In this document: piece after piece, positions 9,559 to 53,047 of the stretch
How the letters are laid out: each line of letters starts with the position of its first letter
How positions within the stretch are numbered: position 1 is the stretch's first letter
Sequence record: KT919972.1
Direction: 5' to 3' (one strand)
DNA: 64,000 bases
Notes under the pieces: generated by a model
Databases searched by the model: none
Seen by the model: only the letters and a program-made list of their open reading frames with translations
Told to the model about the DNA's origin: nothing
Program-made: the position numbers and the translations under genes

Positions 9559-9773
9559 TGAGCAATTTCATTCGAATTCTAGAAGATATGTGTCGCGAGT
9601 TTCGCGGCGAACTGAACGAAGCAGCGACAGCCGAGGTAGATTATTACCTCGTGCAGCTTTACGTCGCTATGCTATCACTAGGTTTCGGCGTACAGATTGC
9701 GATTTACATTTTGTTTTATGTCATTTTTTATCTACCAATGACCGTAATTGGTAAGCTACTAGGGATTAAATAA
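9558..9773 (+). CDS. Small membrane protein
   Basis: Hydrophobic C-terminal half. Confidence 0.6.
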   Translation: MSNFIRILEDMCREFRGELNEAATAEVDYYLVQLYVAMLSLGFGVQIAIYILFYVIFYLPMTVIGKLLGIK

Positions 9774-9790
9774 GAGACGGAGGTGGCATT

Positions 9791-10057
9791 ATGCTAAAGT
9801 CTTTTATTGAAATATCCCTAAACGAAATGACATACCAAGAGTTGCGTGATCTCACGATAAATGAGATTCACGCGCTCGTTAAGAAGCTGAAGAGACAGCT
9901 TCCACAAGAGTACAAGGACATTATCGACGAACTTGAACCAGACATGTACGAAGATCTGATTGCAGAAATAGCATATGATGGTGGTTTGAAAGGTAAGAGA
10001 TTTGTAAACTTAAAAATCCCGAAGCGAATCTTAGATAGGTACGCTGACTACTTCTGA
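9791..10057 (+). CDS. Hypothetical protein with a capsid-targeting-like N-terminus (MLKSFIEISLNE)
   Basis: GGAGG RBS; late-promoter-like ATTAAATA at 9765-9772. Confidence 0.6.
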   Translation: MLKSFIEISLNEMTYQELRDLTINEIHALVKKLKRQLPQEYKDIIDELEPDMYEDLIAEIAYDGGLKGKRFVNLKIPKRILDRYADYF

Positions 10058-10068
10058 GAGAAAATATT

Positions 10069-10461
10069 ATGTTTGATGCTGCTAGTATGCGGTCACGCTA
10101 TAAGCCGAAGCAACCGTCCGACCGTCAGTTAAAGAAAATCGAAGAATTTCAAGATTTTCTGTATAACACTTTGAAATCAATTGATAAAATAGCTGATACA
10201 GAGCTTGAGATAAAAGTCGGTATAAAAGCTGAATTTTATGAATCAGCGGTTGCAGAGTTCGAGAAATTAGGTTACAATATCAGAGCAGTGAAGAATACAT
10301 TCGATATTAAAAATCGAATCAACCCTTACGAGCCGTCAGAAATTGGCTACTTGCAATACGAGACTCACAGTTTAGCACTTGCTTATGTGAATCGTATGTT
10401 GATGGAACACGGTTCTGAACGCATGATATTGACTATAATTGACTGGAGGCGAAAGTCATGA
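10069..10461 (+). CDS. Hypothetical protein
   Basis: GAGAG RBS. Confidence 0.65.
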   Translation: MFDAASMRSRYKPKQPSDRQLKKIEEFQDFLYNTLKSIDKIADTELEIKVGIKAEFYESAVAEFEKLGYNIRAVKNTFDIKNRINPYEPSEIGYLQYETHSLALAYVNRMLMEHGSERMILTIIDWRRKS

Positions 10462-10727
10462 GCATGATTATGAAAGCAGAAGAAGCACGCGCACGCAGCA
10501 TCAAAGTAATGGAAGAGAAGTTTCCCGTTGATGATCTAGAACATCTAGATGAGCGCATTGCACAAGCAACTGATGAAATGCGCTTTGGTATTAATATCAG
10601 AATGCAAGACGAATTGCCAGGTATTGAAAGTCATAGCATGAAACGTCTATTGATTGAATATCTGCGTTTACACAACTACAACGCATTTTATGTCGATAAC
10701 ATTTTGGAGATTCGATGGCAAATTTAA
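10458..10727 (+). CDS. Hypothetical protein
   Basis: GGAGG RBS; ends in LEIRW, like the 9328 ORF (LEVMW). Confidence 0.65.
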   Translation: MSMIMKAEEARARSIKVMEEKFPVDDLEHLDERIAQATDEMRFGINIRMQDELPGIESHSMKRLLIEYLRLHNYNAFYVDNILEIRWQI

Positions 10728-11443: not shown

Positions 11444-11628
11444 CTTTTATTTTTGTTTACTTATTGATTGGTGCACTTTTGACAGTTGCGATTCAAGATA
11501 CATTACACGAAACGTACCGCCAAAACGGTGGTCAAGCGAGTAAAACCGTGGTGAATTTATTATCGACAGTCATCACGCCAGTACTAATGATTGCTCTAAT
11601 CGTGATGAAATTGTTCAAAATTAAATGA
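11440..11628 (+). CDS. Small membrane protein
   Basis: Two hydrophobic segments. Confidence 0.6.
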   Translation: MTFIFVYLLIGALLTVAIQDTLHETYRQNGGQASKTVVNLLSTVITPVLMIALIVMKLFKIK

Positions 11629-11668
11629 TTAAATACGTGCGTCAAATAAAACAATAAAAGGTAATACA

Positions 11669-11914
11669 ATGACGCACGATTTGAATATGCTTCTAGAGCA
11701 GTACAACCTAGCAAATTACGAATGCGATGGTGATTTTGAAGACTATTACTGGTCGGTAGCCGAATGGATTGGTCAGACTGTATTCAGTCATGGGACAATT
11801 CGTAAACATGATATTTTAGAATTGCTATGTGATTTACTAGCAATAGATGAAGACAAAATCAACGTAGATGATGTTGATGACTTCCTTAACGAAGCGTATG
11901 AGGTAATTGAATAA
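11669..11914 (+). CDS. Acidic hypothetical protein
   Basis: AAGG RBS. Confidence 0.65.
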   Translation: MTHDLNMLLEQYNLANYECDGDFEDYYWSVAEWIGQTVFSHGTIRKHDILELLCDLLAIDEDKINVDDVDDFLNEAYEVIE

Positions 11915-15185: not shown

Positions 15186-15208
15186 AAAGGGGGCTTATGC
15201 CCCTTTTT
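15186..15208 (+). terminator. Intrinsic terminator
   Basis: aaagggggc-ttat-gcccctttttg. Confidence 0.8.
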
Positions 15209-15219
15209 GCGTTTGTGCG

Positions 15220-15227
15220 TATAAATA
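15220..15227 (+). promoter_or_regulatory. T4-type late promoter
   Basis: Perfect TATAAATA. Confidence 0.8.
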
Positions 15228-15250: not shown

Positions 15251-16138
15251 ATGATTATATTCGAGGGATATGACGCGCTATTTGAAGCGTTTGATAGAGC
15301 AGCGAATTATGACTGGCTGACCGACGACGAAGCGTTTTTTGAAATCGGCGGGACTATGTATAAGGCAATCATAACTAGCAAAGATGAAGCACGCGGACGC
15401 ATAATTGACGTTTCATTTATGTGGAAAAGACCAGATGGTCAGTATTCATATGAATTAAAGAAATCGGGCAACGCGAAAGATTCATTGATGGTAATGAGTA
15501 CGGTGCTTGCAGCTACGTTTGACAAGGCTAAACGAGAAAACCCAGATTACATTACATTCAGCGCATTTGCAGACCATGACGACAGAGATGCAAAGAAACG
15601 CTATAATCTTTACAAGCGCATGGCTGAACGATACGCAAAGCAGATGGACTATACTTTACAAACGCACGGGCGTATGTTTGTATTAAAAAACAACAACCCA
15701 TCTAATGAAATTAGACGACTACCTAATGATGGTATTAAAGTCGAAGATGAGATCACATATGTTGATTTCCCTAGAGTGAACGCATTCACGTGGGCGACGC
15801 TATTTGAGTGTGAACGACCTGGTGATTTTGAATTGGTTCGTATGACAAATGGGTTCGCTACAATCAAACGGGTTAATGATAAAACAGTTCAAATTAAAGC
15901 ATCAATCAATGGTAATAAATTTGATAACTTAGACACGGTTGAAATCTGGGAAAGTCTTCTAGGTACTATTATTGCTAAACCTGCATGGGGTGGTGATGGA
16001 GAAGCTGAATTACTAGAGAAGGGCGCGATTCTAGAAGATGGTAAAATGCTGATTCTTGACTACAACACACTGTATATGGTTGAAAAGGTAAGCGACTTTG
16101 AAGATGTTTGGGGTCATAGTCTTATTAGAGTTGAATAA
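15251..16138 (+). CDS. Putative internal head/injected protein, paralog family member
   Basis: MIIFEGYDALFEAFDR N-terminus; shares ITFSAF.D...KKR..LYKRMAER with the 50797/51250/52172 ORFs. Confidence 0.65.
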   Translation: MIIFEGYDALFEAFDRAANYDWLTDDEAFFEIGGTMYKAIITSKDEARGRIIDVSFMWKRPDGQYSYELKKSGNAKDSLMVMSTVLAATFDKAKRENPDYITFSAFADHDDRDAKKRYNLYKRMAERYAKQMDYTLQTHGRMFVLKNNNPSNEIRRLPNDGIKVEDEITYVDFPRVNAFTWATLFECERPGDFELVRMTNGFATIKRVNDKTVQIKASINGNKFDNLDTVEIWESLLGTIIAKPAWGGDGEAELLEKGAILEDGKMLILDYNTLYMVEKVSDFEDVWGHSLIRVE

Positions 16139-16167: not shown

Positions 16168-17796
16168 TCATGGTGTTAGAGGACTACGCTCTTTTGTTAG
16201 TCTATCTGCATCGATATCTACATCAACAGAACGCATGAAATTAGCTACTTCTGAAAGCTCGTGTAAACGGTCTTGCTTTTTGAAAGCAGACAATACACCT
16301 TGCTTCGTATCTTCTTTGATTTTCAATCGAATTACAGCGTCGTATTCAGACATTTGAACAACGTCAGCTTCAAACATCGTATTACGGTTGATGATAATCT
16401 CTTTTGAGTCTTTCATACCGTGTTTACCTGAAGCTAAAACAGGCAAGCCGCTCGCTTCTATGATGAATACAACATTCATTTTCTTATCTGACTCAAGCAG
16501 AGAACGCATATCTGATTTACTATTCTTAGCAGTTGAATCAATGATGTTCTTAGAGCTTGATTCAACGAACTTACAAGCAACAAGAGGGTCGATTGACGTT
16601 GAGATAAACGCAGTCGAAACAAACGAGCCAGATTCAAGAATAGAGCGCACATGTTTACTTGACATTTCACAGCCACGATATAACGTCATTCCACCAGCAA
16701 TCATACCAGCTTCAGAAAACGCTTGGTCGATGCGTGAGACAATCTGTGATTCTTTATCAACACCCGTTCCGTGTAATAACTCTTCATTCACCTTCCATGA
16801 AAAACGAGTCGCGGAGTATCTAGCAATAGCAGCTTGTGTAAGTGACGATAGACCCGCAAATGAATCTTCCTGCATAAGTTGCAAAGAAAGACGTTCATAC
16901 TGACTTGCATGAGCACGTGAGCGAGATTCCATGATACTATTCAGAACGCTTTGAGGCTTCTTCGATTCGGCGATATATGAATTCAATGAAACTGCCACAG
17001 TTTCAAGATTCAAACTCATATCAATTAAACCTTTCGCAGCATTAGCAAGAACATGTTCATTGCTTTCATTCAATTGAGAACGAACAGACGAACTTACACG
17101 CGCTTCATATTGAGGCATTTGAAGAACATCATTTGGAACACGTGCAGCGGGGTTTTCTTCTACCCATTTACCTAGTACGTCATCTTCATAGTCGTCATAC
17201 GCAGCATCGGCAGTTACGATAATCGTTTTCTTGCTTGAAATATCAGTTTCGAGTGACATTTTTAACGCAATATCGTTAATTGTTTCTTCAGATGCTTCGA
17301 ATAGCTTATCGGCATTATACCCTGGTTTGGTTACAATAAAGAAGCTGTAATCTTGCGAAATTTCTTCACCACCCACGCCAATAATCTTAGTTGTATCACA
17401 GCCGTAACGTAGCTTTTTAAACAACGTTTTAACCCGCAAGTCGAACATCTTACCCGTACCTAGTTTCTGCACACGCATTGAAACGACATTCGCACGACGT
17501 TTGATCATGAAATCTTGAACCACTTTAACAATAGTTTGTTGAAGCTTTTGTTCATCTCCCATTTCACGAATAGTAACACCGCCTTTTTTGCCGCGCATTG
17601 CTGATACAGTACAGAACCAAGAACGTTTACCGCGATTTCCGATATCTGATTTTGTTTTAGTTGTGAACGAAACAACGATGTCTCTGGCTTCGCCTTTCAT
17701 GTCGATCACAAAGAATTTGTTTTCTTTGGTCGAGCGAGCCGGATAATAGTCGTACGTTGCGCTCATGTTTTCATTTAATTGTTGAAATCCAATCAT
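16168..17796 (-). CDS. alt: Alt-like ADP-ribosyltransferase (R-S-E clade)
   Basis: C-terminal TLYRG, FISTS and KEIIINRN motifs; N-terminus MIGFQQLNE; late-promoter-like motif upstream. Confidence 0.75.
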   Translation of the reverse strand: MIGFQQLNENMSATYDYYPARSTKENKFFVIDMKGEARDIVVSFTTKTKSDIGNRGKRSWFCTVSAMRGKKGGVTIREMGDEQKLQQTIVKVVQDFMIKRRANVVSMRVQKLGTGKMFDLRVKTLFKKLRYGCDTTKIIGVGGEEISQDYSFFIVTKPGYNADKLFEASEETINDIALKMSLETDISSKKTIIVTADAAYDDYEDDVLGKWVEENPAARVPNDVLQMPQYEARVSSSVRSQLNESNEHVLANAAKGLIDMSLNLETVAVSLNSYIAESKKPQSVLNSIMESRSRAHASQYERLSLQLMQEDSFAGLSSLTQAAIARYSATRFSWKVNEELLHGTGVDKESQIVSRIDQAFSEAGMIAGGMTLYRGCEMSSKHVRSILESGSFVSTAFISTSIDPLVACKFVESSSKNIIDSTAKNSKSDMRSLLESDKKMNVVFIIEASGLPVLASGKHGMKDSKEIIINRNTMFEADVVQMSEYDAVIRLKIKEDTKQGVLSAFKKQDRLHELSEVANFMRSVDVDIDADRLTKERSPLTP

Positions 17797-17828: not shown

Positions 17829-17836
17829 TATTTATG
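17829..17836 (-). promoter_or_regulatory. Late-promoter-like motif for the alt-like gene
   Basis: CATAAATA on the minus strand (1 mismatch to TATAAATA). Confidence 0.6.
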
Positions 17837-19540: not shown

Positions 19541-19780
19541 ATGATAACGATATACACAATTCCCAACTGTGACGGCTGTCGTCACGCAATTTCCCTCTGT
19601 AAGTTCAAAAACGTCCCGTACACTGTAATAGAGTTACAGTCTCAATCTGATATCGATAAATTGCATGAGAAACTTGGTGGGGTGCGCAACATTCGCGTGC
19701 CTCTTGCTATGCATGGTGATACATACATAGGTCATCTTCCAGAACTCAAGCAATGGGTTGATAACCAGACATATAAATAA
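19541..19780 (+). CDS. Glutaredoxin (NrdC/NrdH-like)
   Basis: IYTIPNCDGC CxxC; VP...IG. Confidence 0.85.
   Translation: MITIYTIPNCDGCRHAISLCKFKNVPYTVIELQSQSDIDKLHEKLGGVRNIRVPLAMHGDTYIGHLPELKQWVDNQTYK
19772..19779 (+). promoter_or_regulatory. T4-type late promoter
   Basis: Perfect TATAAATA upstream of gene 24. Confidence 0.85.
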
Positions 19781-21265: not shown

Positions 21266-22711
21266 ATGTTAGGTAACTTTGACTCATTTCTGAGTGAAAA
21301 TCGCCGTCAAACTCAGGGTGGTAAAATCTACCCTAAGTTTGGTCAAGTTATTGTTGAGCTAGGCACTGCATCTACTGAGTTCAGCAAAGGCAAAGGCGTT
21401 GAAACAACTATCGGCATGATGGAAAAGGCAAATGAGCTTAAATCTATCATGGGTACTAAACTTGCTGAAGATAAAAACGTCGATGAGAAAAACTTCGATA
21501 TCAATCTGAGCGAGAACGTAAGCACAATCAACTTGCTTATGGAAAACGAATTCTTATCATTGCCAGCACATGAGCTACAGCAAGTTAAGTCTATGATCAT
21601 GTGTACTGAAGCGCGTCTTCCTAGCATCGTGATTAAAGGCGGTTACTTAGATCAAGTTGTTGCTGAAGCGACTAAGCTTGGTTATAAGAAAAATGACATT
21701 CACGTTGTTTTCCCTATGCGTGAAATGAAAATTAATCTTGCTGATTCTGATAAGCTTGTAATTGAATCGCTATCAATTGACGACAATTCAGCATCTGAAG
21801 TACTGTCAATGGCTGAAAACATTGAGCTTGGTGACGTTTATGTGACTGTTGAATCGGTTGATTCAAAAGCTGAACTGTCTGACATCACTGAGATGAAAAT
21901 CAAGTCTGGTAAAAATGCACTTACATTGGCTGCACTGAACCGTAAAATCATGGACTTGTTCATTGTAAAAGAAGCGAAAGACGTATCATACGCTCGTGAA
22001 CGTAAAGACGATACTGGCTTGCCGATGCTAGAAGGCTTCAAAGCATACGATCTGAAACAGAACATCACCATGATTGAACATGCTCAGAACGTTTTCACGA
22101 AAGAAATCGCGACTGCGCCACTGACATCGACTGCATGGCAAAATCTTGTTGATGTGAAAGAAGCGTATTTTGACAACGGTTGGAAGCTGAAACACAACAA
22201 CACAAGTATTGTTCTAACAAACGCGGAACATGCTATGCGTGCAAGTCGTACGTGTTATGAATACCGTGTTGAACTGTCTGAAGCTGGTTACCCGCTTCTT
22301 GATATGATTGCGATGATGGAACGTAAAGGCGTGAAACGTTTTGACTGTAAAGCATTTGCTGAAGCTATGCTATCGTTCGATGGTTGTGTTACCCCTGAGC
22401 GTCAAACAGTGACTGCATTTTCAACAATGGCTGAGTCGAATCGTGTATTCCACCCGAATATCATGTCTAGTCTACGTCCAGTGACTGAAATGGTTGATGA
22501 TGTTGATTCACTGATTCGTGCTCTTGCAAATGATCAGTTCAGTTCATTCAAGGTTGGTCAATCTTTCTCTGAAGCGATGCTTGATCAAGAAACACTTTAC
22601 TCGATGATGGAAAACATCGTTGAAAACGGCGTTGACGTTTCGGTTGACGGTACTTTGATTGAGTTCAGCGTTAACGCAACGAACTATCTGATTGATATTG
22701 ATATTAAGTAG
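21266..22711 (+). CDS. Hypothetical 481-aa protein, candidate internal head protein
   Basis: N-terminus MLGNFDSFLSE; lies in the 24-55 transcription unit. Confidence 0.6.
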   Translation: MLGNFDSFLSENRRQTQGGKIYPKFGQVIVELGTASTEFSKGKGVETTIGMMEKANELKSIMGTKLAEDKNVDEKNFDINLSENVSTINLLMENEFLSLPAHELQQVKSMIMCTEARLPSIVIKGGYLDQVVAEATKLGYKKNDIHVVFPMREMKINLADSDKLVIESLSIDDNSASEVLSMAENIELGDVYVTVESVDSKAELSDITEMKIKSGKNALTLAALNRKIMDLFIVKEAKDVSYARERKDDTGLPMLEGFKAYDLKQNITMIEHAQNVFTKEIATAPLTSTAWQNLVDVKEAYFDNGWKLKHNNTSIVLTNAEHAMRASRTCYEYRVELSEAGYPLLDMIAMMERKGVKRFDCKAFAEAMLSFDGCVTPERQTVTAFSTMAESNRVFHPNIMSSLRPVTEMVDDVDSLIRALANDQFSSFKVGQSFSEAMLDQETLYSMMENIVENGVDVSVDGTLIEFSVNATNYLIDIDIK

Positions 22712-22718: not shown

Positions 22719-23366
22719 ATGAAGCAATTTGGTGAATTTTTAACTGAAGTACAAAAGTACAGTTCCGCAGCAACGTCGATACGTGGTAAAGAAGTAGCAG
22801 CACTGGTTAAACTATACAAGAAAGGTATGTTTACACCGGGTGGTACTGCTCTTGACTATGGTGCTGGTAAATACGGTCGTAACGCTGAATTTTTACGCTC
22901 TGAAGGCATCAAAACGTATGCATATGACAAATTCAATGGTACATCTGCTGATGGTTGGACTGATGTCAGTCTGACTATCCCAAATGGGGAATCATTCGAT
23001 ACGGCGTTTACTTCTTACGTACTGAACGTTGTACCTGAAGAAGTCGAAGCAGAGATTATTCGTGATGTTGAGTCTCGTGCTCGTGGTAAAGTTTTCCATA
23101 TCACTCGCGGTACTGACATTACTCAAACTGTGTTGAACGTGATCAGTGGTAAAAGCAAAAACGATATCATGATGCAATTCATTGCTCAAGAATATCCAGA
23201 TCTGTCTATGCAGATTGAAGCAGGTAATGCAACAAGAGACGTGGCTAAAGAAATTGCTACTCGCGGTGTAGTTACAGCGAAAGACAGCTTTCAACGTATT
23301 CCAGACCTTTCAAAGTACGGTTACAAGAAATCTGGTTCAGGTGCTTCGGTAGTTTGGACAAAATAA
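22719..23366 (+). CDS. Class I SAM-dependent methyltransferase with a capsid-targeting-like N-terminus
   Basis: MKQFGEFLTE; motif I LDYGAGKYG; YD acidic motif; FDTAFTSYVLNVV. Confidence 0.75.
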   Translation: MKQFGEFLTEVQKYSSAATSIRGKEVAALVKLYKKGMFTPGGTALDYGAGKYGRNAEFLRSEGIKTYAYDKFNGTSADGWTDVSLTIPNGESFDTAFTSYVLNVVPEEVEAEIIRDVESRARGKVFHITRGTDITQTVLNVISGKSKNDIMMQFIAQEYPDLSMQIEAGNATRDVAKEIATRGVVTAKDSFQRIPDLSKYGYKKSGSGASVVWTK

Positions 23367-33112: not shown

Positions 33113-35662
33113 GCAATCTATACATCAATTGAACGAATCGGCTCTAATCTTTGTGAACGTTATTTAGATGATGACGGGTTTGAGCATATGCGCAAAGTCA
33201 AATATGAACCGACTCTGTTCATTCACTGTAACGAAGAAACTGGTTACAACGACATCTACGGTCGCAACTGTCGCCCAAAGATGTTTGACACAATGGGCGA
33301 AGCTAGTAAGTACATCAAAGACACTAAGCAGCATCATGAAGTACTCGGTATGGACGACTTCGTTGTAACTTATATCTCTGATACTTACAAAGAACGTAAC
33401 TTCGACATCAATCGTATTCGAATTGCAAATATCGATATCGAAACCCCGTCTGTTGAGTTCCCTGAAGCAGCGCACGCTCCAGTGCCTATTACTTCAATCG
33501 GTCACTATGACAACATCGACGATAAATTCTACGTTTACGGTATTCCATCAAATGAAGAATGGTCGCGTGAAAGCAGCATCGTTAAGCCAGAACTTCTAGA
33601 AAAAACAGTGTATATTCGCTGTGCAACTGAAAAAGAGTTACTTGTTAAGTATCTGCAATTCTGGCGCGAAAAGACCCCAGCAATCGTAACAGGTTGGAAC
33701 ATTGAATCGTTCGATATGCCATACATTGTCAATCGATACAAAAATCTGTTTGGTGAGAAGGTGATGAATAGCTTGTCACCGTGGGGTAAAGTTCACATTT
33801 CGACGATGACTAACGATTACGGTCAAGAAATCTGTAAAGTGAATATCGTCGGCGTATCTGAACTCGATTATCTTCAGCTTTACAAGAAATTCACTTACGT
33901 GACTCGACCATCTTATCGTCTTGATTACATCGGTGAAGTTGAACTTGATGAGAAAAAAGTTGAGTTTACACAAGCGAACTACTTAGAGTTCTATGAGCAA
34001 GATTATCAGAACTTCATTGACTATCAGATTCAAGACGTTAACTTGGTTAAACGACTTGATGAGAAACTTCAGTTGATGCTTTTGACTGTTTCTCTAGCGT
34101 ACTATGCGGGTATCAACTATCAGACGGTACTTGGTACGATTAAACCGTGGGATGCAATCATCTTCAACAGTTTGAAAGCTGAGAAGAAAGTAGTACCAAT
34201 GATGACATCGCACGAAGGTGGTCGATTCATGGGCGCGTTTGTAAAAGCACCTCAAGTGGGTTATCATCGCGGCATTGGCTCTTTCGACTTAACATCACTG
34301 TACCCGTCGATTATTCGTGAGTGTAACATTTCACCAGAAACAATCGTTGGTCAGCTTGACTATGAAGGTACACTTGAAGATCGTATCGACAAGATTGTTG
34401 ACATGGCTATTACGTTCCCTGCTGATGACATTTCAAACAGCGCGAACGGTATGCAATATCGCAAAGACGTGCGTGGTGTAATCCCGATTGAGATTGAGAA
34501 AGTCTTCTTCCAGCGTAAAGCTAATAAGAAGAAAGCGTTCGAATACGAACAGCAAGCAATCGACATCAAGAAAAAAATGGACGAAGAAGGTGAAACACCT
34601 GAACTTCGTGAAGCATACGAGCACGCGAAACATGAAGCGAAGATCTACGACGTACAGCAAATGGCTCGTAAGATCTTGATCAACTCACTCTATGGTGCGT
34701 TAGGTAACGAATACTTCCGCTTCTACGATCTACGTAATGCAGAAGCTGTAACCGCATACGGTCAGCTTGCAATCAAATGGGTAGCGCGTGACGTTAACAT
34801 CTGGTTGAACAAAGTTTGTAAGACAACTGACAAAGACTACGTGATTTACGGTGATACCGACTCAATCTACGTTAACTTTGATCCGCTTCTTGAACTTACT
34901 GGCGTTAACAAACTTGAAGGTGATGAATACACAGATAAATTCTCTAAAGTCTGTGAGACAGTTGAAACGAAAGTTATCAACCCGTCATACGAAGCACTGC
35001 ACAAGTACATGAACACGTATGAGCGTCAAATGTTCATGGACCGAGAAGTTCTAGCACGTACTGGCTTCTTTATCGCGAAAAAGCGTTACGCGCTTGACGT
35101 ACAAGATAACGAAGGCATTCGTAAACCGAAGCTGAAAATCATGGGTATTGAAACTCAACGTAGTTCAACACCACCACTTTGCCAAAAAGGTCTTAAAGAA
35201 GCAATTCGTTTGATTCTGCAAGAAGGCGAAGAGAAGCTTCAAGAATTCGTTAAAGAGTATGAGAAAGAGTTCAAAGTAGCTCCGTATCAAGAAGTGTCGT
35301 TTGTGTCTAGCGCGAACAACATGAACAAATACTCTGACGAGCAAGGTAACCCAGGTAAAGGTTGTCCAGGTCATGTAAAAGGTGCGTTGTACTACAACAA
35401 ACTAGCTGCACAACATGGGTTCGACAAGATCAACGAAGGTGATAAAATCGCTGTTGTGTTCTTGACTCGAAACAAACACGGCATTGACCGTATTGCTTAC
35501 CCATCTGGTGGTAAACTACCTGAACCAATCTCATACTTGATTGACCACGTAGATTACAATCGTTTGTACGAAGATAAGTTCATCAAACCATTGACTGCGA
35601 TTTCTGAAGCAATCAAGTTTGACTACAAGAAAACCATCACATTGGAGAGCTTCTTTGGCTAA
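33110..35662 (+). CDS. gp43: B-family DNA polymerase
   Basis: DIET exonuclease, [43 protein letters not shown]. Confidence 0.98.
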
Positions 35663-39695: not shown

Positions 39696-40247
39696 ATGAT
39701 TGAATTATCAGTAACAGTAGCGGCAATCTTGTTTGTATTGTTTGTAATTTACATGTACAAACGTGCGGCAGACAAGCAAAAAGCAGAAAACGCGAAGTCG
39801 ATGCGTGAACAAGCAAACCCTGACATTCTCGACCGTCTGCGTGACCGCGATGCAAAAGAACTTCGTTCGTTGAATGGTACATCAAGCAATGCAAAATCTC
39901 GCGTGACTCATTCAGTGCGTCATAATGTACCAAAAACTCAATCACTGTCGCGTACTTCTCGTAAGCGTCGTGAAGATGATGACATCGTGACAAATCCGCT
40001 GCATCCCTTAAACCCGATTACTGACCCTGTAGGTCTGTATTCAGATGACGAGCCAGCACGCTCACGACCTGAACCAAGCTACTCTGCTCCTGAGCCGAGT
40101 TACAGCGAACCAGAGCGCGTGTCTAGCCCGGGTAGTTACTCATTCGGTGGTAGTTCTGACAGCTCTTCAAGCTACTCAAGTTCGAGTGATAGTGGTTCAA
40201 GCTACTCAAGCAGCGATAGCAGTTCTGGTGGTGGGAGCTTTGACTAA
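39696..40247 (+). CDS. Membrane-anchored protein with a Ser/Gly-rich tail
   Basis: N-terminal TM; PEPSYS x2; SSSDSGSSYSSSDSSSGGG. Confidence 0.7.
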   Translation: MIELSVTVAAILFVLFVIYMYKRAADKQKAENAKSMREQANPDILDRLRDRDAKELRSLNGTSSNAKSRVTHSVRHNVPKTQSLSRTSRKRREDDDIVTNPLHPLNPITDPVGLYSDDEPARSRPEPSYSAPEPSYSEPERVSSPGSYSFGGSSDSSSSYSSSSDSGSSYSSSDSSSGGGSFD

Positions 40248-41737: not shown

Positions 41738-41767
41738 AAATCCCGTCTTAACCGACGGGATTTTTTT
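41738..41767 (+). terminator. Intrinsic terminator
   Basis: aaatcccgtc-ttaacc-gacgggatttttttt. Confidence 0.85.
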
Positions 41768-41773
41768 GTTTTG

Positions 41774-41781
41774 TCTAAATA
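41774..41781 (+). promoter_or_regulatory. Late-promoter-like motif
   Basis: TCTAAATA (1 mismatch to TATAAATA). Confidence 0.6.
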
Positions 41782-41809: not shown

Positions 41810-43261
41810 ATGAAACAATTTAACGAATTTTATCAAGAAGTTCGCCTTGATGAGATTTCTGACCGTGCGAATATAGACATTGATTGGGATTGGGGGCATG
41901 AGAACGGTACAGGCGAGACTTCAGCGCGATTCAACGCAGCGGGGGAAGGATTCTCGGTTAGCGTAGACGAAAGCAACCCTGGTTATTTCTCAATCACATT
42001 CCAAAACTCAGGTGGCTATGCTCAGACAGGTAAAGCAGGACACTCTGCGGCTGCGGTATTCTCTGGTGTATTGACGACTCTACGTGAATTCACCGAGACG
42101 TATGAAGAAGAAATGGGCATGAAGCCGTATGAATATGACTTCAGCGCAGCGTACGAGCTACCAGCAAATCATGAGTACTACGCACTGAATAACAATCGAC
42201 GCGAAGCAACTCGCTTAGACGAAGAAAGTAAGAAAAAGCTATTGAAAGACTTGATTTCCCGTCCAATGCTGTACTACGCACTGTCACTGACTTTCGGTAA
42301 AGAATATGGCTATTCGACTGAGATTAGCGACCGCTGGCTTGCACGTCTAGCAGGTGGTGCAAACGATTTCCGTTCTGTTCGTAAGAACGTGACGCGCAGC
42401 ATTCTTTCAATGAGCGACAGCGACGTTAACCAAGCGTTGATGAGTATGAGCGGTTCAGTTTCGTTTACTCTTACCAATGAACACGAACGTCCTAGCAGCT
42501 ACGACACTGCATTCGGTGGCGGTCCGTCTCTTGAAGATTACGTCGATGAAGCAGATCAATACCAAATCGAAGCATGGATCAATGAAGGTCGTGAAGATGA
42601 AATCATTGAACACGCAGATTGGCAAACTCTAGTTCGTATTGCTAGTTGGGGTCTGATGCACGAAGAGCTGATTTTCCATGATGACGAAGACGTTCGTAAT
42701 GCAGTTATTGCCTCTGATTACGAAATGGGTGAGAAACTTGCAACATCTGATGAAGGGGAACATCGTAAGCAAGCTGCTGAAAATGGTTTTGCTATCTGGG
42801 ATCTTGTTCTTGACTCGGACGAGGACGTGCGAGAAGCGGCATGGGAATGGTCTTTCGAGAACGACGACGCAGATACACGTATCACATATGCGAAACGCTA
42901 CGAAAGTGAATTCGGTCGTGATATGGCAGAAGATATCTGGGATAGAATGGTCGATGATACAGATGATTACGAAGAACGCCAATACGTAGCCGAGCAAGGT
43001 TATCGAGTTGATGAACTTCTAGCAGACCATGACGAAGATGTTCGCGAATCTGCAATTGGTGCGGTATTTAACGTACTGGGGTTAGAGGGTCGCGAAGCTG
43101 CTGAGTTCTTGATGAATAACTCAGATCCATATCAAGAAGAAGTGTTTGAATACGCTATAAATGGTAACTTCGGTCCGTCATTTGATGAAGCACTTATTGA
43201 GCTTGCTGAAGAAAACGGCGTTGATGTATCTGAGTACAAAGACGACGAAGACGAAGAATAA
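41810..43261 (+). CDS. Candidate internal head protein with an acidic HEAT/LRV-like repeat C-terminus
   Basis: MKQFNEFYQEVRLDE; repeats HDDEDVRNAV, DSDEDVREAA, DHDEDVRESA. Confidence 0.65.
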   Translation: MKQFNEFYQEVRLDEISDRANIDIDWDWGHENGTGETSARFNAAGEGFSVSVDESNPGYFSITFQNSGGYAQTGKAGHSAAAVFSGVLTTLREFTETYEEEMGMKPYEYDFSAAYELPANHEYYALNNNRREATRLDEESKKKLLKDLISRPMLYYALSLTFGKEYGYSTEISDRWLARLAGGANDFRSVRKNVTRSILSMSDSDVNQALMSMSGSVSFTLTNEHERPSSYDTAFGGGPSLEDYVDEADQYQIEAWINEGREDEIIEHADWQTLVRIASWGLMHEELIFHDDEDVRNAVIASDYEMGEKLATSDEGEHRKQAAENGFAIWDLVLDSDEDVREAAWEWSFENDDADTRITYAKRYESEFGRDMAEDIWDRMVDDTDDYEERQYVAEQGYRVDELLADHDEDVRESAIGAVFNVLGLEGREAAEFLMNNSDPYQEEVFEYAINGNFGPSFDEALIELAEENGVDVSEYKDDEDEE

Positions 43262-45287: not shown

Positions 45288-45310
45288 AAAAGGGGCTTTC
45301 GCCCCTTTTT
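45288..45310. terminator. Bidirectional intrinsic terminator
   Basis: aaaaggggc-tttc-gccccttttt between convergent genes. Confidence 0.85.
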
Positions 45311-46364
45311 ATGGTCGGTAAATCATGTGATTCGACCCCATTCTCTCCCACGTACCTAGATTCATGCGATTGCGCATTTCAGCGAATAATGCTGGGTTTG
45401 CTCGTATGTCATCGAGTGGTAGTGCAACGACACCTTCAGTTTTATGTGCTAGTAGCTCAAGTTTATCTAGTAAATCACTAGAGTTGCGACCGTCGTATTT
45501 AAACTGACTAAACCAATAACCAATCTTACTAAATTTCTGATCTCTGGTGTATCTTACATCAAATCCTTTCAACGAATACTTCAAACTACTTTCTTTACCT
45601 TTGAACGGCTGTCTCGACTCGCTGTGTTCAGCACCCGCACGTGAGATCAATCGTTTCTTAGCATCACTTGGTATATTTTCCCACCCATCAAAGTTGTGTT
45701 TAAATCGATTAATCCATGCCTGAGCAGTAGCTGGTGAATTTTTAAAATCTGCTTTAGTATCAGCGATAGCTTGAGCATAACGAGCGTTTATCTCATGCGA
45801 ATAGTTCTGATATTCGTCGTGAGTCGCTTTGTGTCCGCTTTTAGCGTGACGGATGAACTCTTTGTCGATGTAAGCTCTATTGCGCCCTGAGTGTTGATAC
45901 ACACCCTCTTCGTCGCGTGTCTCGAAGTCTTCTATATCACCAGAACGCCAGTTATCATAAGCATGTTGCAGTTCATGCAATGCAGTGCTGTACATTTGCT
46001 CTTTCTTGACTCTAAACTTAGCCATAATCTGACTCACCGCAGTAACACCGGTTATATCAACGGTGATTTGCAAGTTCCCTGCTTCACCTGCTTCTGGGTC
46101 GTGTAAAGCACCGCGCCAAACACCCATTTCGGTTGGGTTTTGGTTATCAAGTTTAAGATAAGCAACGATACCACGCGCAAGAAGCGCATCGAACTCAGTT
46201 TCACCAGTTTTGATGTTCAGATTCTTGGTATTAAGTGCGAGTTTGTTCGGGTCGAATGGTGGGCTACTCAGAGCAGCTTCTAATTGTGTTTCAAGCTTAT
46301 CGACGATAAACTTAGATGCGTACTCTAATGCACGCTGCGATTGAACGCTTTCAAAAATAATCAT
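45309..46364 (-). CDS. Zincin-like metallopeptidase, candidate injected protein
   Basis: ALHELQHAYD plus downstream Y.N..HEINAR; N-terminus MIIFESVQSQRALE; minus-strand CCTAAATA upstream. Confidence 0.7.
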   Translation of the reverse strand: MIIFESVQSQRALEYASKFIVDKLETQLEAALSSPPFDPNKLALNTKNLNIKTGETEFDALLARGIVAYLKLDNQNPTEMGVWRGALHDPEAGEAGNLQITVDITGVTAVSQIMAKFRVKKEQMYSTALHELQHAYDNWRSGDIEDFETRDEEGVYQHSGRNRAYIDKEFIRHAKSGHKATHDEYQNYSHEINARYAQAIADTKADFKNSPATAQAWINRFKHNFDGWENIPSDAKKRLISRAGAEHSESRQPFKGKESSLKYSLKGFDVRYTRDQKFSKIGYWFSQFKYDGRNSSDLLDKLELLAHKTEGVVALPLDDIRANPALFAEMRNRMNLGTWERMGSNHMIYRP

Positions 46365-46382: not shown

Positions 46383-46441
46383 TTGACTGTATTACTTATT
46401 TAGGTTAATATCTATCGCATCGAAACGAAAGAGAGAACACT
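46383..46441 (+). promoter_or_regulatory. Early promoter and leader overlapping a divergent late-promoter-like motif
   Basis: GG-TTGACT-N18-TAATAT; CATCGAAACGA; minus-strand TAAATA inside the spacer (46398-46403). Confidence 0.65.
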
Positions 46442-48216: not shown

Positions 48217-48293
48217 CATTGCAGCAATGTACTGCAATTCGCGTCTGGTTAGGTTGTACAGATAAAATAAAACTTAAAAATAATAGGTATAAA

Positions 48294-49670
48294 ATGAAAA
48301 AACTTTGGCTTTCATTAGCATTGTTATGTTCTACAGCGTCAACAACAGCGGCTACATTCACGGGACTACCTGCTGAGGGTGTTGAAACCCCGAGTCCTTT
48401 CACAACTGAGTTCACGTTCCCTTACATGACGAACGGCTATCATAACTCAGTGTTACGTACTTGGTTAAACAGCGCGATGCAAGAAGCAGACGCTGAATAT
48501 AAGAAAACAGGTGAAATCAGTCAGACCGTTAACAGTACTTACATTTCGATGGATAGTAACGGTTACGGGTTCTGGAAAGATTCAACTGACATGCGTACAA
48601 TGTCACCGAGTGATGACATGCGTGCTCTTAGTACACTTGCTATGGCACCATTGAAATGGGCGTGTTCGGTATCTGGTAGCGCATGTTTCGACAGCGGTTT
48701 TGAGTACTCGCTTCGTATGAATGCAGACTCAAGTAAGTTTGATGTGAATGGCTCGCTTGATGTGGGTTGGGCTAACTTACGTCGCGAGAGCTGTCGCTAT
48801 CAGCTCGGTAAGCGTGTATGTTACACAGTAAACGACATGAACTACGGTGGTGACCTAGCGGGCTTCTGGATCAAAGCGTTGAACTGGTTGAATACGACTG
48901 AAGATCTATCAAACATCAAGACATCAATTGACCAAGCGACCAAGACGTTTGACCGCCCTTACTTGATGGTTAATGCAACGTTAATCCCGGGCATGGGTGG
49001 TGATGGTAATCTATCATACTTCCACATGGCAGACTCTAAGTGGTGGGAAACATGGCAAAAGCAAGTGAACTCGAACTCAGTTCAAGTTGGTTACAAACTA
49101 GCCTTAATTGAACCGATTCTGACTGGTAACAGTTCTGGTCTATATCAGACATACTCACCGCAGACTGACGATCTACGAAACTTCCCGCACTTGGAAGGTC
49201 GTATTCCACTGTATGAATACAGCTCAGTACGTGCAATTGAGATTTTGAAGATGCAGCGTGAAAACGCATTGATCGGCGCGTCGATGAAAGCATATGCAGG
49301 GTTCAATAACAACTTCGAGTCGTGCCGTGCGAACATGATCATGACAGGCGATGAAGGTTACTTACCTGCACCTGGTTATTCAGGTGGCGTCACTTCAATT
49401 TACGGTGTTGCACCGTCATACGACGAACACACAACCTTTGCGATTTTCGCATGGGCGGCAAACACCAAGTCTGAGTCGAAGATGTACGATCTTGCAAACT
49501 ACGACCACAACACTCGCGTATTCTTACACGAAATCGGTCATAACTACGGCTACGGTCATAACTCAACACCGAACACAGATCAATACTGGAAAGATTTGAG
49601 CGAAGAGCGTGTTCCGTACGTACGCTCTAAGATTGATAAGGGCGAACATTGCGGTGGGCGCGTACTTTAA
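48294..49670 (+). CDS. Exported zinc metalloprotease-like protein
   Basis: Sec-type signal MKKLWLSLALLCSTASTTAA; C-terminal HEIGHNYGYGH (HExxHxxGxxH). Confidence 0.75.
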   Translation: MKKLWLSLALLCSTASTTAATFTGLPAEGVETPSPFTTEFTFPYMTNGYHNSVLRTWLNSAMQEADAEYKKTGEISQTVNSTYISMDSNGYGFWKDSTDMRTMSPSDDMRALSTLAMAPLKWACSVSGSACFDSGFEYSLRMNADSSKFDVNGSLDVGWANLRRESCRYQLGKRVCYTVNDMNYGGDLAGFWIKALNWLNTTEDLSNIKTSIDQATKTFDRPYLMVNATLIPGMGGDGNLSYFHMADSKWWETWQKQVNSNSVQVGYKLALIEPILTGNSSGLYQTYSPQTDDLRNFPHLEGRIPLYEYSSVRAIEILKMQRENALIGASMKAYAGFNNNFESCRANMIMTGDEGYLPAPGYSGGVTSIYGVAPSYDEHTTFAIFAWAANTKSESKMYDLANYDHNTRVFLHEIGHNYGYGHNSTPNTDQYWKDLSEERVPYVRSKIDKGEHCGGRVL

Positions 49671-49923: not shown

Positions 49924-50229
49924 ATGAGACGACAAATCAATAGAATGAAAAACGATAATGGTGATTTCGAGCGTTATATGCGCACGCAAGCAGCTAGATA
50001 CGCTCGAAGAGAGATCATCAACAATATAGCCGATGACAATGACATCTTCTTAGTCGGTTCTTACACGATGTACAAAGATTGTGATGAAAAGGTTGTTCTT
50101 CAGCTTGTACGATACGCAGGTTACGAGCGTGCTGAAGTTAAAGCAGTGCCGATTGTCGGTAGTCTTGTTGATTGTGTTAATGTCATTCACGGTGTTGGGT
50201 TTAGAGTGGTGCTAAATAATGATAGTTAA
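49924..50229 (+). CDS. Hypothetical protein
   Basis: GAGG RBS. Confidence 0.65.
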   Translation: MRRQINRMKNDNGDFERYMRTQAARYARREIINNIADDNDIFLVGSYTMYKDCDEKVVLQLVRYAGYERAEVKAVPIVGSLVDCVNVIHGVGFRVVLNNDS

Positions 50230-50503: not shown

Positions 50504-50506
50504 TCT

Positions 50507-50800
50507 ATGAGAGAAGCAATTGCATTATTGAAAAACACGAAGATGAGTTATACGGACATTAGCGCATTCGGCGACCCCGTAGTATATGTTCATGCAGGTC
50601 ATGAAACGATTTTGAAAGTAGAATACACTGAAGATTGCTACTCATTTTTCGATTACAGAAGCAAGTACCTCTATACTGAACAATCAATCGACGACTTAGA
50701 AATACATTTAAAATCAATAGATGTCGGTCTTGACGACGATCTACCATTGAATGGTAATATCGACAAAGACACGATACCCGACGGGGAATTTTTAGAATGA
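50507..50800 (+). CDS. Hypothetical protein
   Basis: ORF. Confidence 0.65.
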   Translation: MREAIALLKNTKMSYTDISAFGDPVVYVHAGHETILKVEYTEDCYSFFDYRSKYLYTEQSIDDLEIHLKSIDVGLDDDLPLNGNIDKDTIPDGEFLE

Positions 50801-51246
50801 AATTTAGCGAATATCAAAACGAGCTAACAGAAGCATTTGACCGACCAGCACAGATCACAGCACGTCGTGGAAATAAGAGCTTTTTTAACGTCGGTGACAA
50901 ACGTTACATCGTCGAACTCGCATATGAAGAATACGATAAATCTATAAATGTTGAGTTTATGTATATGTCCAGAGAATCACTAACATGGAGCTATAATCTC
51001 GCGAAAGGCGATGCTAGAGACGCGATTACAGTTTTTGCAACTGTTATATCTGAAATTGAAGAATTAATGCGTAGCAAAGATGTAAATTATATACATTTCA
51101 ACGCATTTAGCGATTCGAACGCGGATGATTATCGTAAGAGACTTAGTGTATACAAACGTATTGCAAAACGATTTGCTGATGAACTTGGGTTTAAGGTTGT
51201 GTATGACATGGGTTCTATTTCACTTGAAAGACTTGATAAAAGGTAG
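50797..51246 (+). CDS. Putative internal head/injected protein, paralog family (shared domain only)
   Basis: MKFSEYQNELTEAFDRPA. Confidence 0.65.
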   Translation: MKFSEYQNELTEAFDRPAQITARRGNKSFFNVGDKRYIVELAYEEYDKSINVEFMYMSRESLTWSYNLAKGDARDAITVFATVISEIEELMRSKDVNYIHFNAFSDSNADDYRKRLSVYKRIAKRFADELGFKVVYDMGSISLERLDKR

Positions 51247-51249
51247 AAA

Positions 51250-52170
51250 ATGAAATTTAGCGAATATCAAAGACTCAACGAGTCGTTAGATCGACCAGCG
51301 AAATATAATCTCGTCCGTGAGTTACCAAATTTAAACGTGTATGAGTTTCAAGTTGATGGTGTTTATTATGAAATAGACATTCAGAAAGGCATTATACGTG
51401 AACCGAACGGGATGAAGTCTATGAAGGCTGATGTGTCGTTCAAAGCTCTTGATGGTAGTGGTTATAATCTAACTAAGAAAGATGATAAAACAGCACGAGT
51501 CGTATTATCAACGGTTGTCGATGCGATTTTCAGTTTTGTTAGAGACAATTCACCTGCTCAAATAACATATAGCGCGTTCAATGACGCTGATCAGCGTGAT
51601 GCAGATAAACGTCTCAGACTGTATAAGATCATGACAAAGGCGAAACTTAGAGAATTCCCTCAGTATGATTACAGAAACGTAGGTCGTGAATTCATTGTGT
51701 ATGATGTGGGTTATCAACAACGTGTAGATGACTTTTCACGTCGAGCACGTCGTCCAGTCGGGTTTGAAGAACATAGCGACCATGTTGAAGTTAATTTATC
51801 TCACGCCAATGCATATGCATTTGTAAGAGCGTTTGAAGTTGAAGATGGTTCGATGATTAGTGGTGTTCTAGGGCAAGGTCGTGCAGTTGTAAAAGCGGCT
51901 GACGAAATTGCAGCTAGGTTACGTGTAAATCGCGTTGTGTATGAAATGTCTGACCGAGAGGGATGGTTAGCAGCACTACAGCACCCAATTTTCGACTATG
52001 GTGAGGGTCCTGAAGAAGATAGAACATATCTGGTTGGTGCATTCAAGAACTTCTATATCGTCTTGACTAGTCAAACAAGTCTAAAAATATACACCGACGA
52101 TGCAGCGTTTACCAAATATGTGAATGCATTCGATGCGCCGTGGTTAAACCCAGAAATAATGGAATCTTAA
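51250..52170 (+). CDS. Putative internal head/injected protein, paralog family plus unique C-domain
   Basis: MKFSEYQRLNESLDRPA; ITYSAF.D...DKRLRLYK. Confidence 0.65.
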   Translation: MKFSEYQRLNESLDRPAKYNLVRELPNLNVYEFQVDGVYYEIDIQKGIIREPNGMKSMKADVSFKALDGSGYNLTKKDDKTARVVLSTVVDAIFSFVRDNSPAQITYSAFNDADQRDADKRLRLYKIMTKAKLREFPQYDYRNVGREFIVYDVGYQQRVDDFSRRARRPVGFEEHSDHVEVNLSHANAYAFVRAFEVEDGSMISGVLGQGRAVVKAADEIAARLRVNRVVYEMSDREGWLAALQHPIFDYGEGPEEDRTYLVGAFKNFYIVLTSQTSLKIYTDDAAFTKYVNAFDAPWLNPEIMES

Positions 52171-52171
52171 A

Positions 52172-53047
52172 ATGAAATTTAGCGAATATCAAAACGAGCT
52201 AACAGAAGCGTTTAACCGCGCTGCACCCATAACAGCACGCCGTGGTAATCAGAGTTACTTCGAAATAGACGGCGCAGAGTATATGATTGGTCTGTATTAT
52301 GAAGAAGATCGCAAAGCTCTAGGTGTCGATTTTATGTATAAGCCAGCGGGTGCAATGTCTTACAGTTACAGCCTAGCAAAGGGTGATTCTAAAGACGCGA
52401 TGACTGTTTTCGCCACGGTTATTTCTGAAATTAAGCACGTGATGCAAAACAACATCGTAAATCGAATCACATTTGCAGCATTTGATGACACAAATCGTTC
52501 TGATTCCCGTAAGCGTACTCGATTATACAAAAGAATGGCTGAACGATTTGCCAAAGATTTAGGTTTCAAATTGAGAGTATCAAATGAATCTGAAGGTGCG
52601 TCATTCGTGATGGAAAGAATCGTTCCTATTGAAGACCCAAAGCCTGTTCACACTGATAACCCGACTGGATATGATACAGAAATGGGAACTGAATTGCTCG
52701 ATTTACCTACAATCAACGACGCTGCTATTGTTAAAGTAACGGGTGGTGATGGTATTTGGTATCTTCGTGGCGGTCACTCGTTAAACATCGAAGCTGGTAT
52801 TGTTGAACTTTCGCCAGGTAGCATCAATGATGATGTTGCTTGGTATAAATCATTTTACACGTTAGAGTGGTATTATGAACCTGAAGACGAGCTTTTCTAC
52901 GATGATGAGCAACGTATAGCAATGATTTCTGGTAAGATCTGGGTAATCAATGGAAATGAGATCACCGTTTGGAGTGATGTTAGTTCTCTTGAAGCCCAAA
53001 GTGATTCGAAATTGAGTCAAACAACGTTAGAACGAATTGGTGCTTAA
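52172..53047 (+). CDS. Putative internal head/injected protein, paralog family plus unique acidic C-domain
   Basis: MKFSEYQNELTEAFNRAA; first 38 nt identical to the 50797 gene. Confidence 0.65.
   Translation: MKFSEYQNELTEAFNRAAPITARRGNQSYFEIDGAEYMIGLYYEEDRKALGVDFMYKPAGAMSYSYSLAKGDSKDAMTVFATVISEIKHVMQNNIVNRITFAAFDDTNRSDSRKRTRLYKRMAERFAKDLGFKLRVSNESEGASFVMERIVPIEDPKPVHTDNPTGYDTEMGTELLDLPTINDAAIVKVTGGDGIWYLRGGHSLNIEAGIVELSPGSINDDVAWYKSFYTLEWYYEPEDELFYDDEQRIAMISGKIWVINGNEITVWSDVSSLEAQSDSKLSQTTLERIGA

Follow-up and report, generated by a model that had tools for sequence, protein, structure and literature searches.

Leaders resembling T4 capsid-targeting sequences on ten dispersed genes of Vibrio phage phi-Grn1 and their association with a DUF6934 module

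The 64,000-nucleotide stretch analyzed here (the window) is 100% identical to bases 124001-188000 of Vibrio phage phi-Grn1 (KT919972.1), a KVP40-like member of the genus Schizotequatrovirus (Straboviridae) with a 248.6-kb genome. Ten open reading frames (ORFs) scattered across the window begin with a short leader resembling the capsid-targeting sequence (CTS) of the internal proteins of phage T4. The leader set is real and non-random, and T4-type capsid targeting followed by processing by a gp21-type prohead protease is, with moderate confidence, its best explanation. An initial annotation of the window had proposed that the ten products form a dispersed arsenal of capsid-targeted, probably injected effectors, and the ORFs and N-terminal strings on which it relied all read exactly as quoted. 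In order to evaluate this proposal, the window was compared with the remainder of the phi-Grn1 genome and with the syntenic 50-kb regions of KVP40, nt-1, 6E35.1a, F86 and 1.081.O (together with phi-Grn1, the six phages). Protein identity of the ten genes to these five relatives ranges from roughly 95% down to 35-50%. The GenBank record starts the gene for Alt at 17709 and the 88-residue ORF at 9827, on downstream Met codons, and both leaders are thereby lost. The longer starts of the initial annotation (17796 and 9791, respectively) are correct, because the alignments of the five relatives begin at residue 1 and their records annotate the long forms. The ten genes are as follows (aa, amino acids; nt, nucleotides; HMM, hidden Markov model).

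9791..10057, plus strand: acidic protein, 88 aa; leader MLKSFIEISLNE at aa 1-12 (nt 9791-9826), then a highly conserved body starting MTYQELRDL.
15251..16138, plus strand: DUF6934 paralog, 295 aa; leader MIIFEGYDALFE (aa 1-12), DUF6934 at aa 13-148 (nt 15287-15694; E 1.3e-29 with a leader-free HMM), then a C-terminal domain.
16168..17796, minus strand: Alt ADP-ribosyltransferase (ART), 542 aa; leader MIGFQQLNE (aa 1-9), probable Alt-N/DUF6934-like region at about aa 10-112, ART domain at aa 317-495 (nt 16312-16848).
21266..22711, plus strand: 481-aa protein; leader MLGNFDSFLSE (aa 1-11).
22719..23366, plus strand: class I S-adenosylmethionine (SAM)-methyltransferase-like protein, 215 aa; leader MKQFGEFLTE (aa 1-10).
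41810..43261, plus strand: acidic repeat protein, 483 aa, isoelectric point (pI) 4.2; leader MKQFNEFYQE(VRLDE), DUF6934-like region at aa 25-175 (nt 41882-42334), then HEAT/armadillo-like DEDVR repeats.
45309..46364, minus strand: HExxH protein, 351 aa; N-terminus MIIFESVQSQRALE, HELQH at aa 130-134 (nt 45963-45977), HEINAR at aa 190-195.
50797..51246, plus strand: DUF6934-only protein, 149 aa; leader MKFSEYQNELTE; E 1e-32 with the leader-free HMM.
51250..52170, plus strand: DUF6934 paralog, 306 aa; leader MKFSEYQRLNE, DUF6934 at aa 12-135 (E 9e-22), then a C-terminal domain.
52172..53047, plus strand: DUF6934 paralog, 291 aa; leader MKFSEYQNELTE, DUF6934 at aa 13-150 (E 1.9e-31), then a C-terminal domain.

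The T4 CTS comprises 10-19 residues, in which residues 4 and 7 are the main determinants of targeting and residues 8 and 10 those of processing (PMC9026906). Because a bare (L/I/A)-x-E rule is unspecific, a strict motif was fixed beforehand from the T4 literature, consisting of M, 1-4 residues, an aromatic residue, two residues, a second aromatic residue, 0-6 residues and [LIVA]-x-E within 17 residues. Genome-wide, 14 genes present this motif. Shuffling of the N-termini gave 1.5 +/- 1.2 (never more than 6 in 500 shuffles), and 1.9 would be expected on the basis of internal Met positions, so that the enrichment over the two controls is approximately eightfold. Phe or Tyr occupies position 3-5 in all ten window leaders and is followed three positions later by another aromatic residue in seven of them and by I, V or L in the rest. 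The leaders end in LNE (9791, Alt and 51250), LTE (22719, 50797 and 52172), LFE (15251), LSE (21266), YQE/LDE (41810) and ALE, an atypical site (46364). In the T4 record, internal proteins (IP) IPII and IPIII start with MKTYQEFIAE and IPI with MKTFKEF, and the leaders MKQFGEFLTE (22719) and MKQFNEFYQE (41810) are near-identical to them. Across the five relatives, down to about 40-50% protein identity, every family retains both the first part of the leader and its final x-E, and the length of the linker between them may vary. The 9791 orthologs carry MLKSFIE followed by ISLNE, LNE, HDRFTE, HQALMTE or HNIICE ahead of the near-invariant MTYQELRDL, with the head M[LH]KSFIE conserved and x-x-E placed before the conserved M in the six phages. 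In a second example, MIIFE is followed by GYDALFE, DINPLCE, no linker or PFQLDE ahead of AFDR. A variable linker in front of a fixed mature N-terminus is the behavior expected of a removable propeptide. The 21266 family, which is restricted to the lineage of phi-Grn1, keeps F-x-[DS]-[FY]-L-x-E/N (here and below, a slash before the downstream residues marks the junction) down to 37% identity, its distant members lying at 37-44%.

The machinery that would act on such leaders is also encoded by phi-Grn1, with annotated homologs of gp21, gp22, gp67 and gp68 (record 86544-88728) and homologs of the portal protein and gp23. The specificity of the prohead protease is, on sequence grounds, very likely unchanged, because the gp23 site (GLNE/AVVNGDHGY, aligned with T4 FLTE/AEIGGDHGY), an LLIE near the N-terminus of the gp21 homolog and the start of the gp68 homolog (MKFISEAVQE) are all kept. 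For part of the set, the predicted site can be related to a mapped one. By mass spectrometry, T4 Alt was found to lose six residues through a cut at ITE-6 and 63 residues through one at LTE-619 (PMC5694885), and the T4 Alt N-terminus, MELITE/LFDE, presents the same junction as LTE/AFD, LNE/SLD and LFE/AFD in phi-Grn1. Since this junction, [IL]-[TN]-E/[ALS]-[FL]-D, is common to the phi-Grn1 paralogs and their metagenomic family, the predicted sites of the DUF6934 subset are anchored to an experimental site. A conserved [LIM]xE about 33 aa from the Alt C-terminus in the six phages recalls the C-terminal cut of T4 Alt.

Several of the leader genes are also associated with late-promoter motifs, of which the following lie in the window.

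15220..15227, plus strand: perfect late-promoter motif TATAAATA, 31 nt before ORF 15251 and after a terminator-like hairpin; kept in five of five relatives.
17829..17836, minus strand: late-promoter-like motif CATAAATA, 40 nt before the Alt start; kept in five of five relatives.
19772..19779, plus strand: perfect TATAAATA before gp24; gp55, ORF 21266 and ORF 22719 follow with short gaps.
41774..41781, plus strand: late-promoter-like motif TCTAAATA, just after a terminator-like hairpin and 36 nt before ORF 41810; present in four relatives.
46397..46404, minus strand: late-promoter-like motif CCTAAATA, 40 nt before ORF 46364; CTAAATA core kept in five of five relatives.

Of the 14 genomic copies of the TATAAATA motif, 10 lie 12-80 nt upstream of a same-strand gene; the same position is taken by 11 of 19 VATAAATA and 15 of 29 NCTAAATA instances, with 0.8-1.6 expected for each of the three motifs, and two control variants show no enrichment or weak enrichment. 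The genes behind the enriched motifs are mostly known late genes (gp22, gp23, sheath, tube, baseplate and fibers). CTAAATA is found upstream of tail-tube and tail-fiber genes as well, and it is published that the first base of KVP40 late promoters varies and that Aeh1 has a CTAAATA variant (PMC1524935). The association of leader genes with late motifs is significant for the ten (Fisher p = 0.007) and when six candidates elsewhere in the genome are added (p = 1e-5). Four of the ten (15251, Alt, 41810 and 46364) have a conserved late motif of their own, and a further two (21266 and 22719) lie downstream of the gp24 promoter at 19772, which may drive them, and gp55, by read-through. In 1.081.O, no motif of the 41774 type was seen in the 45 nt that were read ahead of the 41810 ortholog. 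Among the motifs listed in the initial annotation, those at 15220 and 19772 are indeed perfect and those at 17829, 41774 and 46398 belong to an enriched class, but two were rejected: ATTAAATA at 9765, overlapping the upstream stop codon, is of a class that shows no enrichment, and GCTAAATA at 50211 lies inside an overlapping coding sequence and becomes GTTAAATA in two relatives. In T4 itself, TATAAATA is absent from the 60 nt read upstream of the internal-protein genes, and hence a missing late promoter does not exclude packaging. A hairpin followed by a late motif (15190-15227; 41738-41781) precedes ORF 15251 and ORF 41810 and, with TATAAATA as at ORF 15251, T4 alt alike. This layout suggests self-contained late transcription units within early-gene regions.

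The best characterized of the ten products is Alt. Its assignment as an ART is confirmed by Pfam ADPrib_exo_Tox (PF03496; 24.2 bits against a cut-off of 23.4), by PHROG 802 (E 1.5e-88) and by the conservation in the six phages of the catalytic motifs R, S-x-S and E, in the form LYRG, S-[TSA]-S and [ED]-x-x-INR. The four paralogs (15251, 50797, 51250 and 52172) can be aligned over about 140 N-terminal residues; ORF 50797 is a partial duplicate of ORF 52172 and is absent from KVP40 and nt-1. A profile of this N-terminal region matched 716 proteins (E <= 0.001) among 1.84 billion representatives, many of them 800-2,200 aa long with three to five copies of the domain. Against Pfam DUF6934 (PF22028) the window proteins score 13.6-17.9 bits, under the cut-off of 27, and all seven sampled profile matches score above it (29.6-162.6 bits); the predicted DUF6934 membership of the window proteins therefore holds through transitive profile search and not through Pfam's own threshold. 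A local HMM built from 41 single-domain DUF6934 members and searched against all 404 phi-Grn1 ORFs matched the four paralogs, the C-terminal copy in gene 0103, ORF 41810 (E 2e-10) and Alt (E 1e-3), and ORF 41810 was retained (E 2.6e-8, residues 25-175) when the leader columns were removed from the model. Gene 0103 (KT919972.1 94643-95563, minus strand; 306 aa) is a two-part phi-Grn1 protein with a protease-type junction inside it, NLTE/AFDRPS, located before its C-terminal DUF6934 (E 2e-34).

The relationship between the N-terminal region of Alt (Alt-N) and DUF6934 is more distant. Pairwise BLASTP of Alt-N against the paralogs returned nothing and a shallow local hhalign comparison failed too, but hhalign of Alt-N from the six phages against a 38-sequence DUF6934 alignment yielded a probability of 83% (E 9e-6), with the LNE of Alt aligned to the l-x-E of the family. 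The AlphaFold model of ORF 50797 (predicted local distance difference test, pLDDT, 85; predicted template modeling score, pTM, 0.78) matches predicted viral structures with template modeling (TM) scores of 0.55-0.7, including Alt/ART proteins of the T4-like phages phiAS5, HY03, SP18, CF1, Henu6 and Melville. Further fold matches are annotated as ParB/Srx, zeta toxin and cytidine deaminase, and in other phages the fold is fused to such domains and to ART. A Foldseek search of the DUF6934 model against the PDB gave weak GNAT-like and RNase E DNase-I-domain matches (TM 0.36-0.43), from which no functional call was drawn. Alt-N is, on these profile and model comparisons, a probable relative of DUF6934, and is rated no higher because only the deeper 38-sequence profile scored and the leader-free HMM lost Alt. 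Hence, five of the ten proteins, and probably Alt as well, appear to combine a leader, a DUF6934-type domain and a variable C-terminus. This side result on DUF6934 is previously unreported, and no paper on the function of the domain was found in the literature.

In metagenomic phage proteins, 231 of 244 DUF6934 copies are preceded by [LIVMF]xE (90 of the 92 N-terminal ones and 141 of the 152 internal ones), and the aromatic pair is largely limited to the N-terminal copies (38/92 versus 10/152). Three metagenomic DUF6934 gene neighborhoods are phage-like, but their flanks have nothing else in common with phi-Grn1, so that the T4-likeness of these phages is not established. These observations lead to a broader and speculative proposal, which we regard as rather unlikely. 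DUF6934 would be the N-terminal domain of Alt and a widespread head-internal module, with a prohead-protease junction [LIVMF]-x-E/[ASL]-[FL]-D before each copy and a T4-like tag at the N-terminus that loads the core and is trimmed by the protease. The metagenomic giants (1,000-2,200 aa, three to five copies) would then be polyproteins cut in the capsid to single domains and cargo (ART, ParB/Srx, zeta-toxin, deaminase, GNAT), and the phi-Grn1 set would be their unfused form, a literal "split polyvalent" arrangement.

The methyltransferase call of the initial annotation holds for ORF 22719 at the level of the family: motif I (DYGAGKYGR) is invariant, and among more than 230 matches of about 215 aa many have a precomputed PF13489 (Methyltransf_23) assignment, the match of the window protein itself being weak (E 0.014). 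Many distant members of this family begin with MK[SQT]F.[EQN][FL][LI].E, a CTS-like start. The zincin call for ORF 46364 stands at the level of motifs. HELQH and HEINAR are invariant in 23 homologs and both lie on predicted helices (AlphaFold2 model, pLDDT 86), but the protein has no Pfam, NCBIfam or PDB sequence match and no Foldseek match in the PDB with E below 0.4. NCBIfam returned nothing for any of the ten proteins, and PDB sequence searches with Alt, the methyltransferase and the HExxH protein gave nothing useful.

Taken as a T4-type system, the tag would be an N-terminal propeptide of 9-15 residues, in which a hydrophobic/aromatic pair spaced three apart is followed by (L/I/..)-x-E. 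During prohead assembly the propeptide would bind the protein to the gp22/gp67/gp68 scaffolding core; the gp21-type protease would cut behind the Glu and free the mature protein within the head, and at infection the mature protein would exit with the DNA, like T4 Alt and the T4 internal proteins. In five proteins and probably Alt, the tag would belong to a leader-DUF6934 (Alt N-terminal type) module carrying ART, HEAT-like repeats or other C-terminal cargo. Packaging, cleavage, ejection and host-directed activity are what we infer for the ten, and ejection together with an anti-defense or takeover role is an extrapolation from T4. The confidence in T4-type targeting and processing differs among genes. 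It is high for Alt, and the DUF6934 paralogs and ORF 41810 are reasonably good candidates; for ORFs 21266 and 22719 the balance tips slightly in favor, and for ORFs 9791 and 46364 the assignment is tentative, falling a little short of even.

A number of observations weigh against this interpretation. Up to six of the ten genes are not independent instances, given that the four paralogs and the acidic repeat protein, and probably Alt, share the leader-plus-DUF6934 module, and this qualifies a capsid-targeting claim that otherwise rests on T4-like, conserved and late-promoter-associated leaders, on the presence of gp21, gp22, gp67 and gp68 and on a preserved gp23 site. Inspection of upstream regions in phi-Grn1 and its relatives revealed no convincing late promoter for 9791, 50797, 51250 or 52172. 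The loose (L/I/A)-x-E expression fits 48 starts genome-wide, about one in ten, LxE being common by chance. The 1.081.O ortholog of 21266 has Ala in place of the P1 Glu, the sole exception to the conservation of xxE. The T4 internal proteins are basic, but most of the candidates have an acidic or neutral character. The Alt-N/DUF6934 link vanishes with the leader-free HMM, and T4 Alt, like alt.-1 and alt.-2, is not detected by the DUF6934 HMM. The LxE junction belongs to every repeat of DUF6934 proteins, and in the AlphaFold2 model residues 3-14 form a helix that runs on into the domain without a break. The residues E5, Q10 and E14 show little or no variation across the HExxH family, including homologs with an N-terminal extension, and this retention at positions that are not N-terminal weakens the tag interpretation for 46364. 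Finally, the searchable literature yielded neither virion proteomics nor transcript data on these genes, nor a proteomic study of any KVP40-like virion, and the phi-Grn1 paper makes no mention of the leaders.

Some of these observations can be accommodated by a structural explanation, in which the shared N-terminus is an element of the fold (the first helix of DUF6934 and of the HExxH family), the likeness to T4 is inherited or coincidental, and the proteins are cytoplasmic and never packaged. The model-based continuity of the helix with the domain and the recurrence of the LxE junction before internal copies are what this explanation predicts, and for DUF6934 a structural role of the junction within the domain is equally possible; a single homologous module in up to six of the ten, the invariant residues of the HExxH family and the location of four genes in early-type operons without a late promoter point in the same direction. 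The explanation does not extend, however, to the occurrence of the same leader on families with no detectable mutual relationship (the methyltransferase, 21266, 9791 and small basic ORFs) and on T4 internal proteins, nor to the aromatic pair being largely confined to N-terminal copies. T4 Alt, moreover, is packaged and cut exactly at the matching junction, and two opposite-strand genes have conserved late motifs of their own. We therefore consider a purely structural origin unlikely.

A second alternative accepts packaging but assigns the proteins to the assembly of the unusually large elongated prohead, as additional core or scaffold components that are degraded by gp21 and expelled or left as peptides, rather than as effectors. 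KVP40 head-size determination is unexplained (PMC3012670), and the ten genes are conserved across relatives as core genes would be, with the exception of 50797 in KVP40 and nt-1. The gp68 homolog has a similar start, as noted above, and the density of [LI]xE in the 9791 protein reaches the 98th percentile, comparable to gp68, gp21 and gp22 (92nd-100th percentile). This 88-aa protein may instead be core-type and degraded to peptides. In most candidates, however, [LI]xE density is ordinary or low, such that they should survive the protease; in the methyltransferase ORF 22719 the single [LI]xE in 215 residues is the leader site. The conservation of enzymatic motifs in Alt, the methyltransferase and the HExxH protein and the ejection of T4 Alt further argue against a scaffolding role, which is improbable for the set as a whole. 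T4 gp67 and gp68 differ from most of the candidates in a further respect, since core genes lie in the head cluster and their products are degraded, whereas the candidates have few internal sites. Chance likeness among short N-terminal strings chosen by eye in an AT-rich genome can be dismissed as highly implausible, because the permissiveness of the loose rule and the capture of doubtful genes by the strict one (for example portal protein, window 5545) are outweighed by the roughly eightfold enrichment over two controls, the conservation of leaders across relatives, the late-promoter association and the recurrence of the leader in hundreds of metagenomic homologs.

Capsid targeting and gp21 processing of the T4 type thus remain the favored explanation, and the comparison with known systems indicates what would be new about it. 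The tag-plus-gp21 mechanism and diverse CTS-tagged internal proteins are already accepted for T-even phages, and the advance is in scope and cargo. The closest precedent is T4 IPI, IPII and IPIII (Mullaney and Black 1996; PMC9026906, PMC3012670), with which the phi-Grn1 set shares a putative propeptide of 10-19 aa with key positions 4 and 7 and an (I/L)-x-E end, a gp21-type protease, diverse unrelated mature parts and dispersed genes. The genes are scattered, as the initial annotation had remarked, but this is not unusual, given that T4 ipI, ipII/III and alt are dispersed too. The phi-Grn1 proteins differ in being larger (88-542 aa) and mostly acidic or neutral, in including enzymes and in having no homology to IPI-III. 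As with T4 alt (PMC5694885), the phi-Grn1 Alt gene adjoins DNA ligase on the opposite strand and has a late-promoter motif, and its product has an N-terminal xxE junction and an [LIM]xE near the C-terminus. Its leader, in contrast, has nine residues instead of six and an IP-like aromatic residue, and the relation between the N-terminal regions is supported by a profile-profile match and a fold match rather than by similarity to the T4 Alt sequence itself. T4 alt.-1 and alt.-2, which the annotation of T4 describes as an old duplication of the initial portion of alt, recall the DUF6934 paralogs, including the partial duplicate 50797.

The resemblance to polyvalent proteins and MuF-fused effectors (Iyer et al. 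2017, PMC5512222; PMC9503650) lies in the idea of a virion-delivered ART, methyltransferase and zincin and in a head-associated N-terminal module combined with variable effector domains. In phi-Grn1, however, each gene stands by itself and encodes one or two domains, and targeting would occur via a T4 tag and not via MuF. Neither homology to MuF, to the polyvalent-protein metallopeptidase or to polyvalent-type DNA methyltransferases nor a Pfam match to polyvalent-specific domains was detected, and the genes encode at most one recognizable catalytic or repeat domain each, compared with two to fifteen disparate effector domains per polypeptide in polyvalent proteins. The "split polyvalent protein" of the initial annotation is thus an analogy, with no domain shown to be homologous to those of polyvalent proteins. 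The ejection proteins of phiKZ-like phages and SPN3US, which use a gp21-related protease, offer a further parallel in their many head-internal proteins, in paralogs with identical N-termini and in cleavage after Glu at a short motif, but their propeptides are much longer, their motif is A/S-x-E, and both the lineage and the proteins are different.

CTS-like starts occur elsewhere in KT919972.1. An unannotated, lysine-rich ORF of 68 aa (34378-34584, minus strand; pI 10.1) has the leader MSDKTFDKFMSELQE and a CTAAATA 39 nt upstream, and looks like a classical small basic internal protein. Similar starts are found in MSIKTFSEYLNE (39841-40116, minus strand), with TATAAATA upstream; in MNDEKIKSFEEYLNE (33437-33808, plus strand), with GATAAATA upstream; in MIEFLTE (95566-96159, minus strand), with CTAAATA upstream; and in MLRFNEYEN (97213-97701, minus strand) and MELKTFDEYKETELKE (195695-196246, minus strand). 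Among these five further genes outside the window, two have hydrophobic, membrane-like stretches. A 490-aa SGNH hydrolase on the opposite strand in 1.081.O (L008 42834-44306, minus strand) has TATAAATA upstream and was kept out of the set, as it lacks a CTS-like leader; it is an extra gene of that phage, phi-Grn1 having other genes at that place. In the window itself, positions 54572-59938 contain genes annotated as 6-pyruvoyl-tetrahydropterin synthase, GTP cyclohydrolase I, 7-cyano-7-deazaguanine reductase and QueC. These genes belong to the 7-deazaguanine (queuosine-precursor) pathway, and a hypothetical gene of 458 aa lies between them. A large ORF at 48219-49670 (plus strand; annotated start 48294) has a signal-peptide-like N-terminus, MKKLWLSLALLCSTASTTAA, and an ortholog in nt-1.

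If the favored explanation is correct, KVP40-type jumbo vibriophages would package at least 10 proteins, in addition to further candidates, as compared to Alt and three internal proteins in T4, among them an ART, an enzyme resembling methyltransferases, possibly a metallopeptidase and a DUF6934 family encoded by several genes. The set would thereby provide a list of candidate first-minute host-takeover or anti-defense factors in phages used for aquaculture biocontrol, a testable role for DUF6934, a domain common in phage metagenomes, and naturally occurring leaders with which foreign proteins could be loaded into the heads of Vibrio phages.

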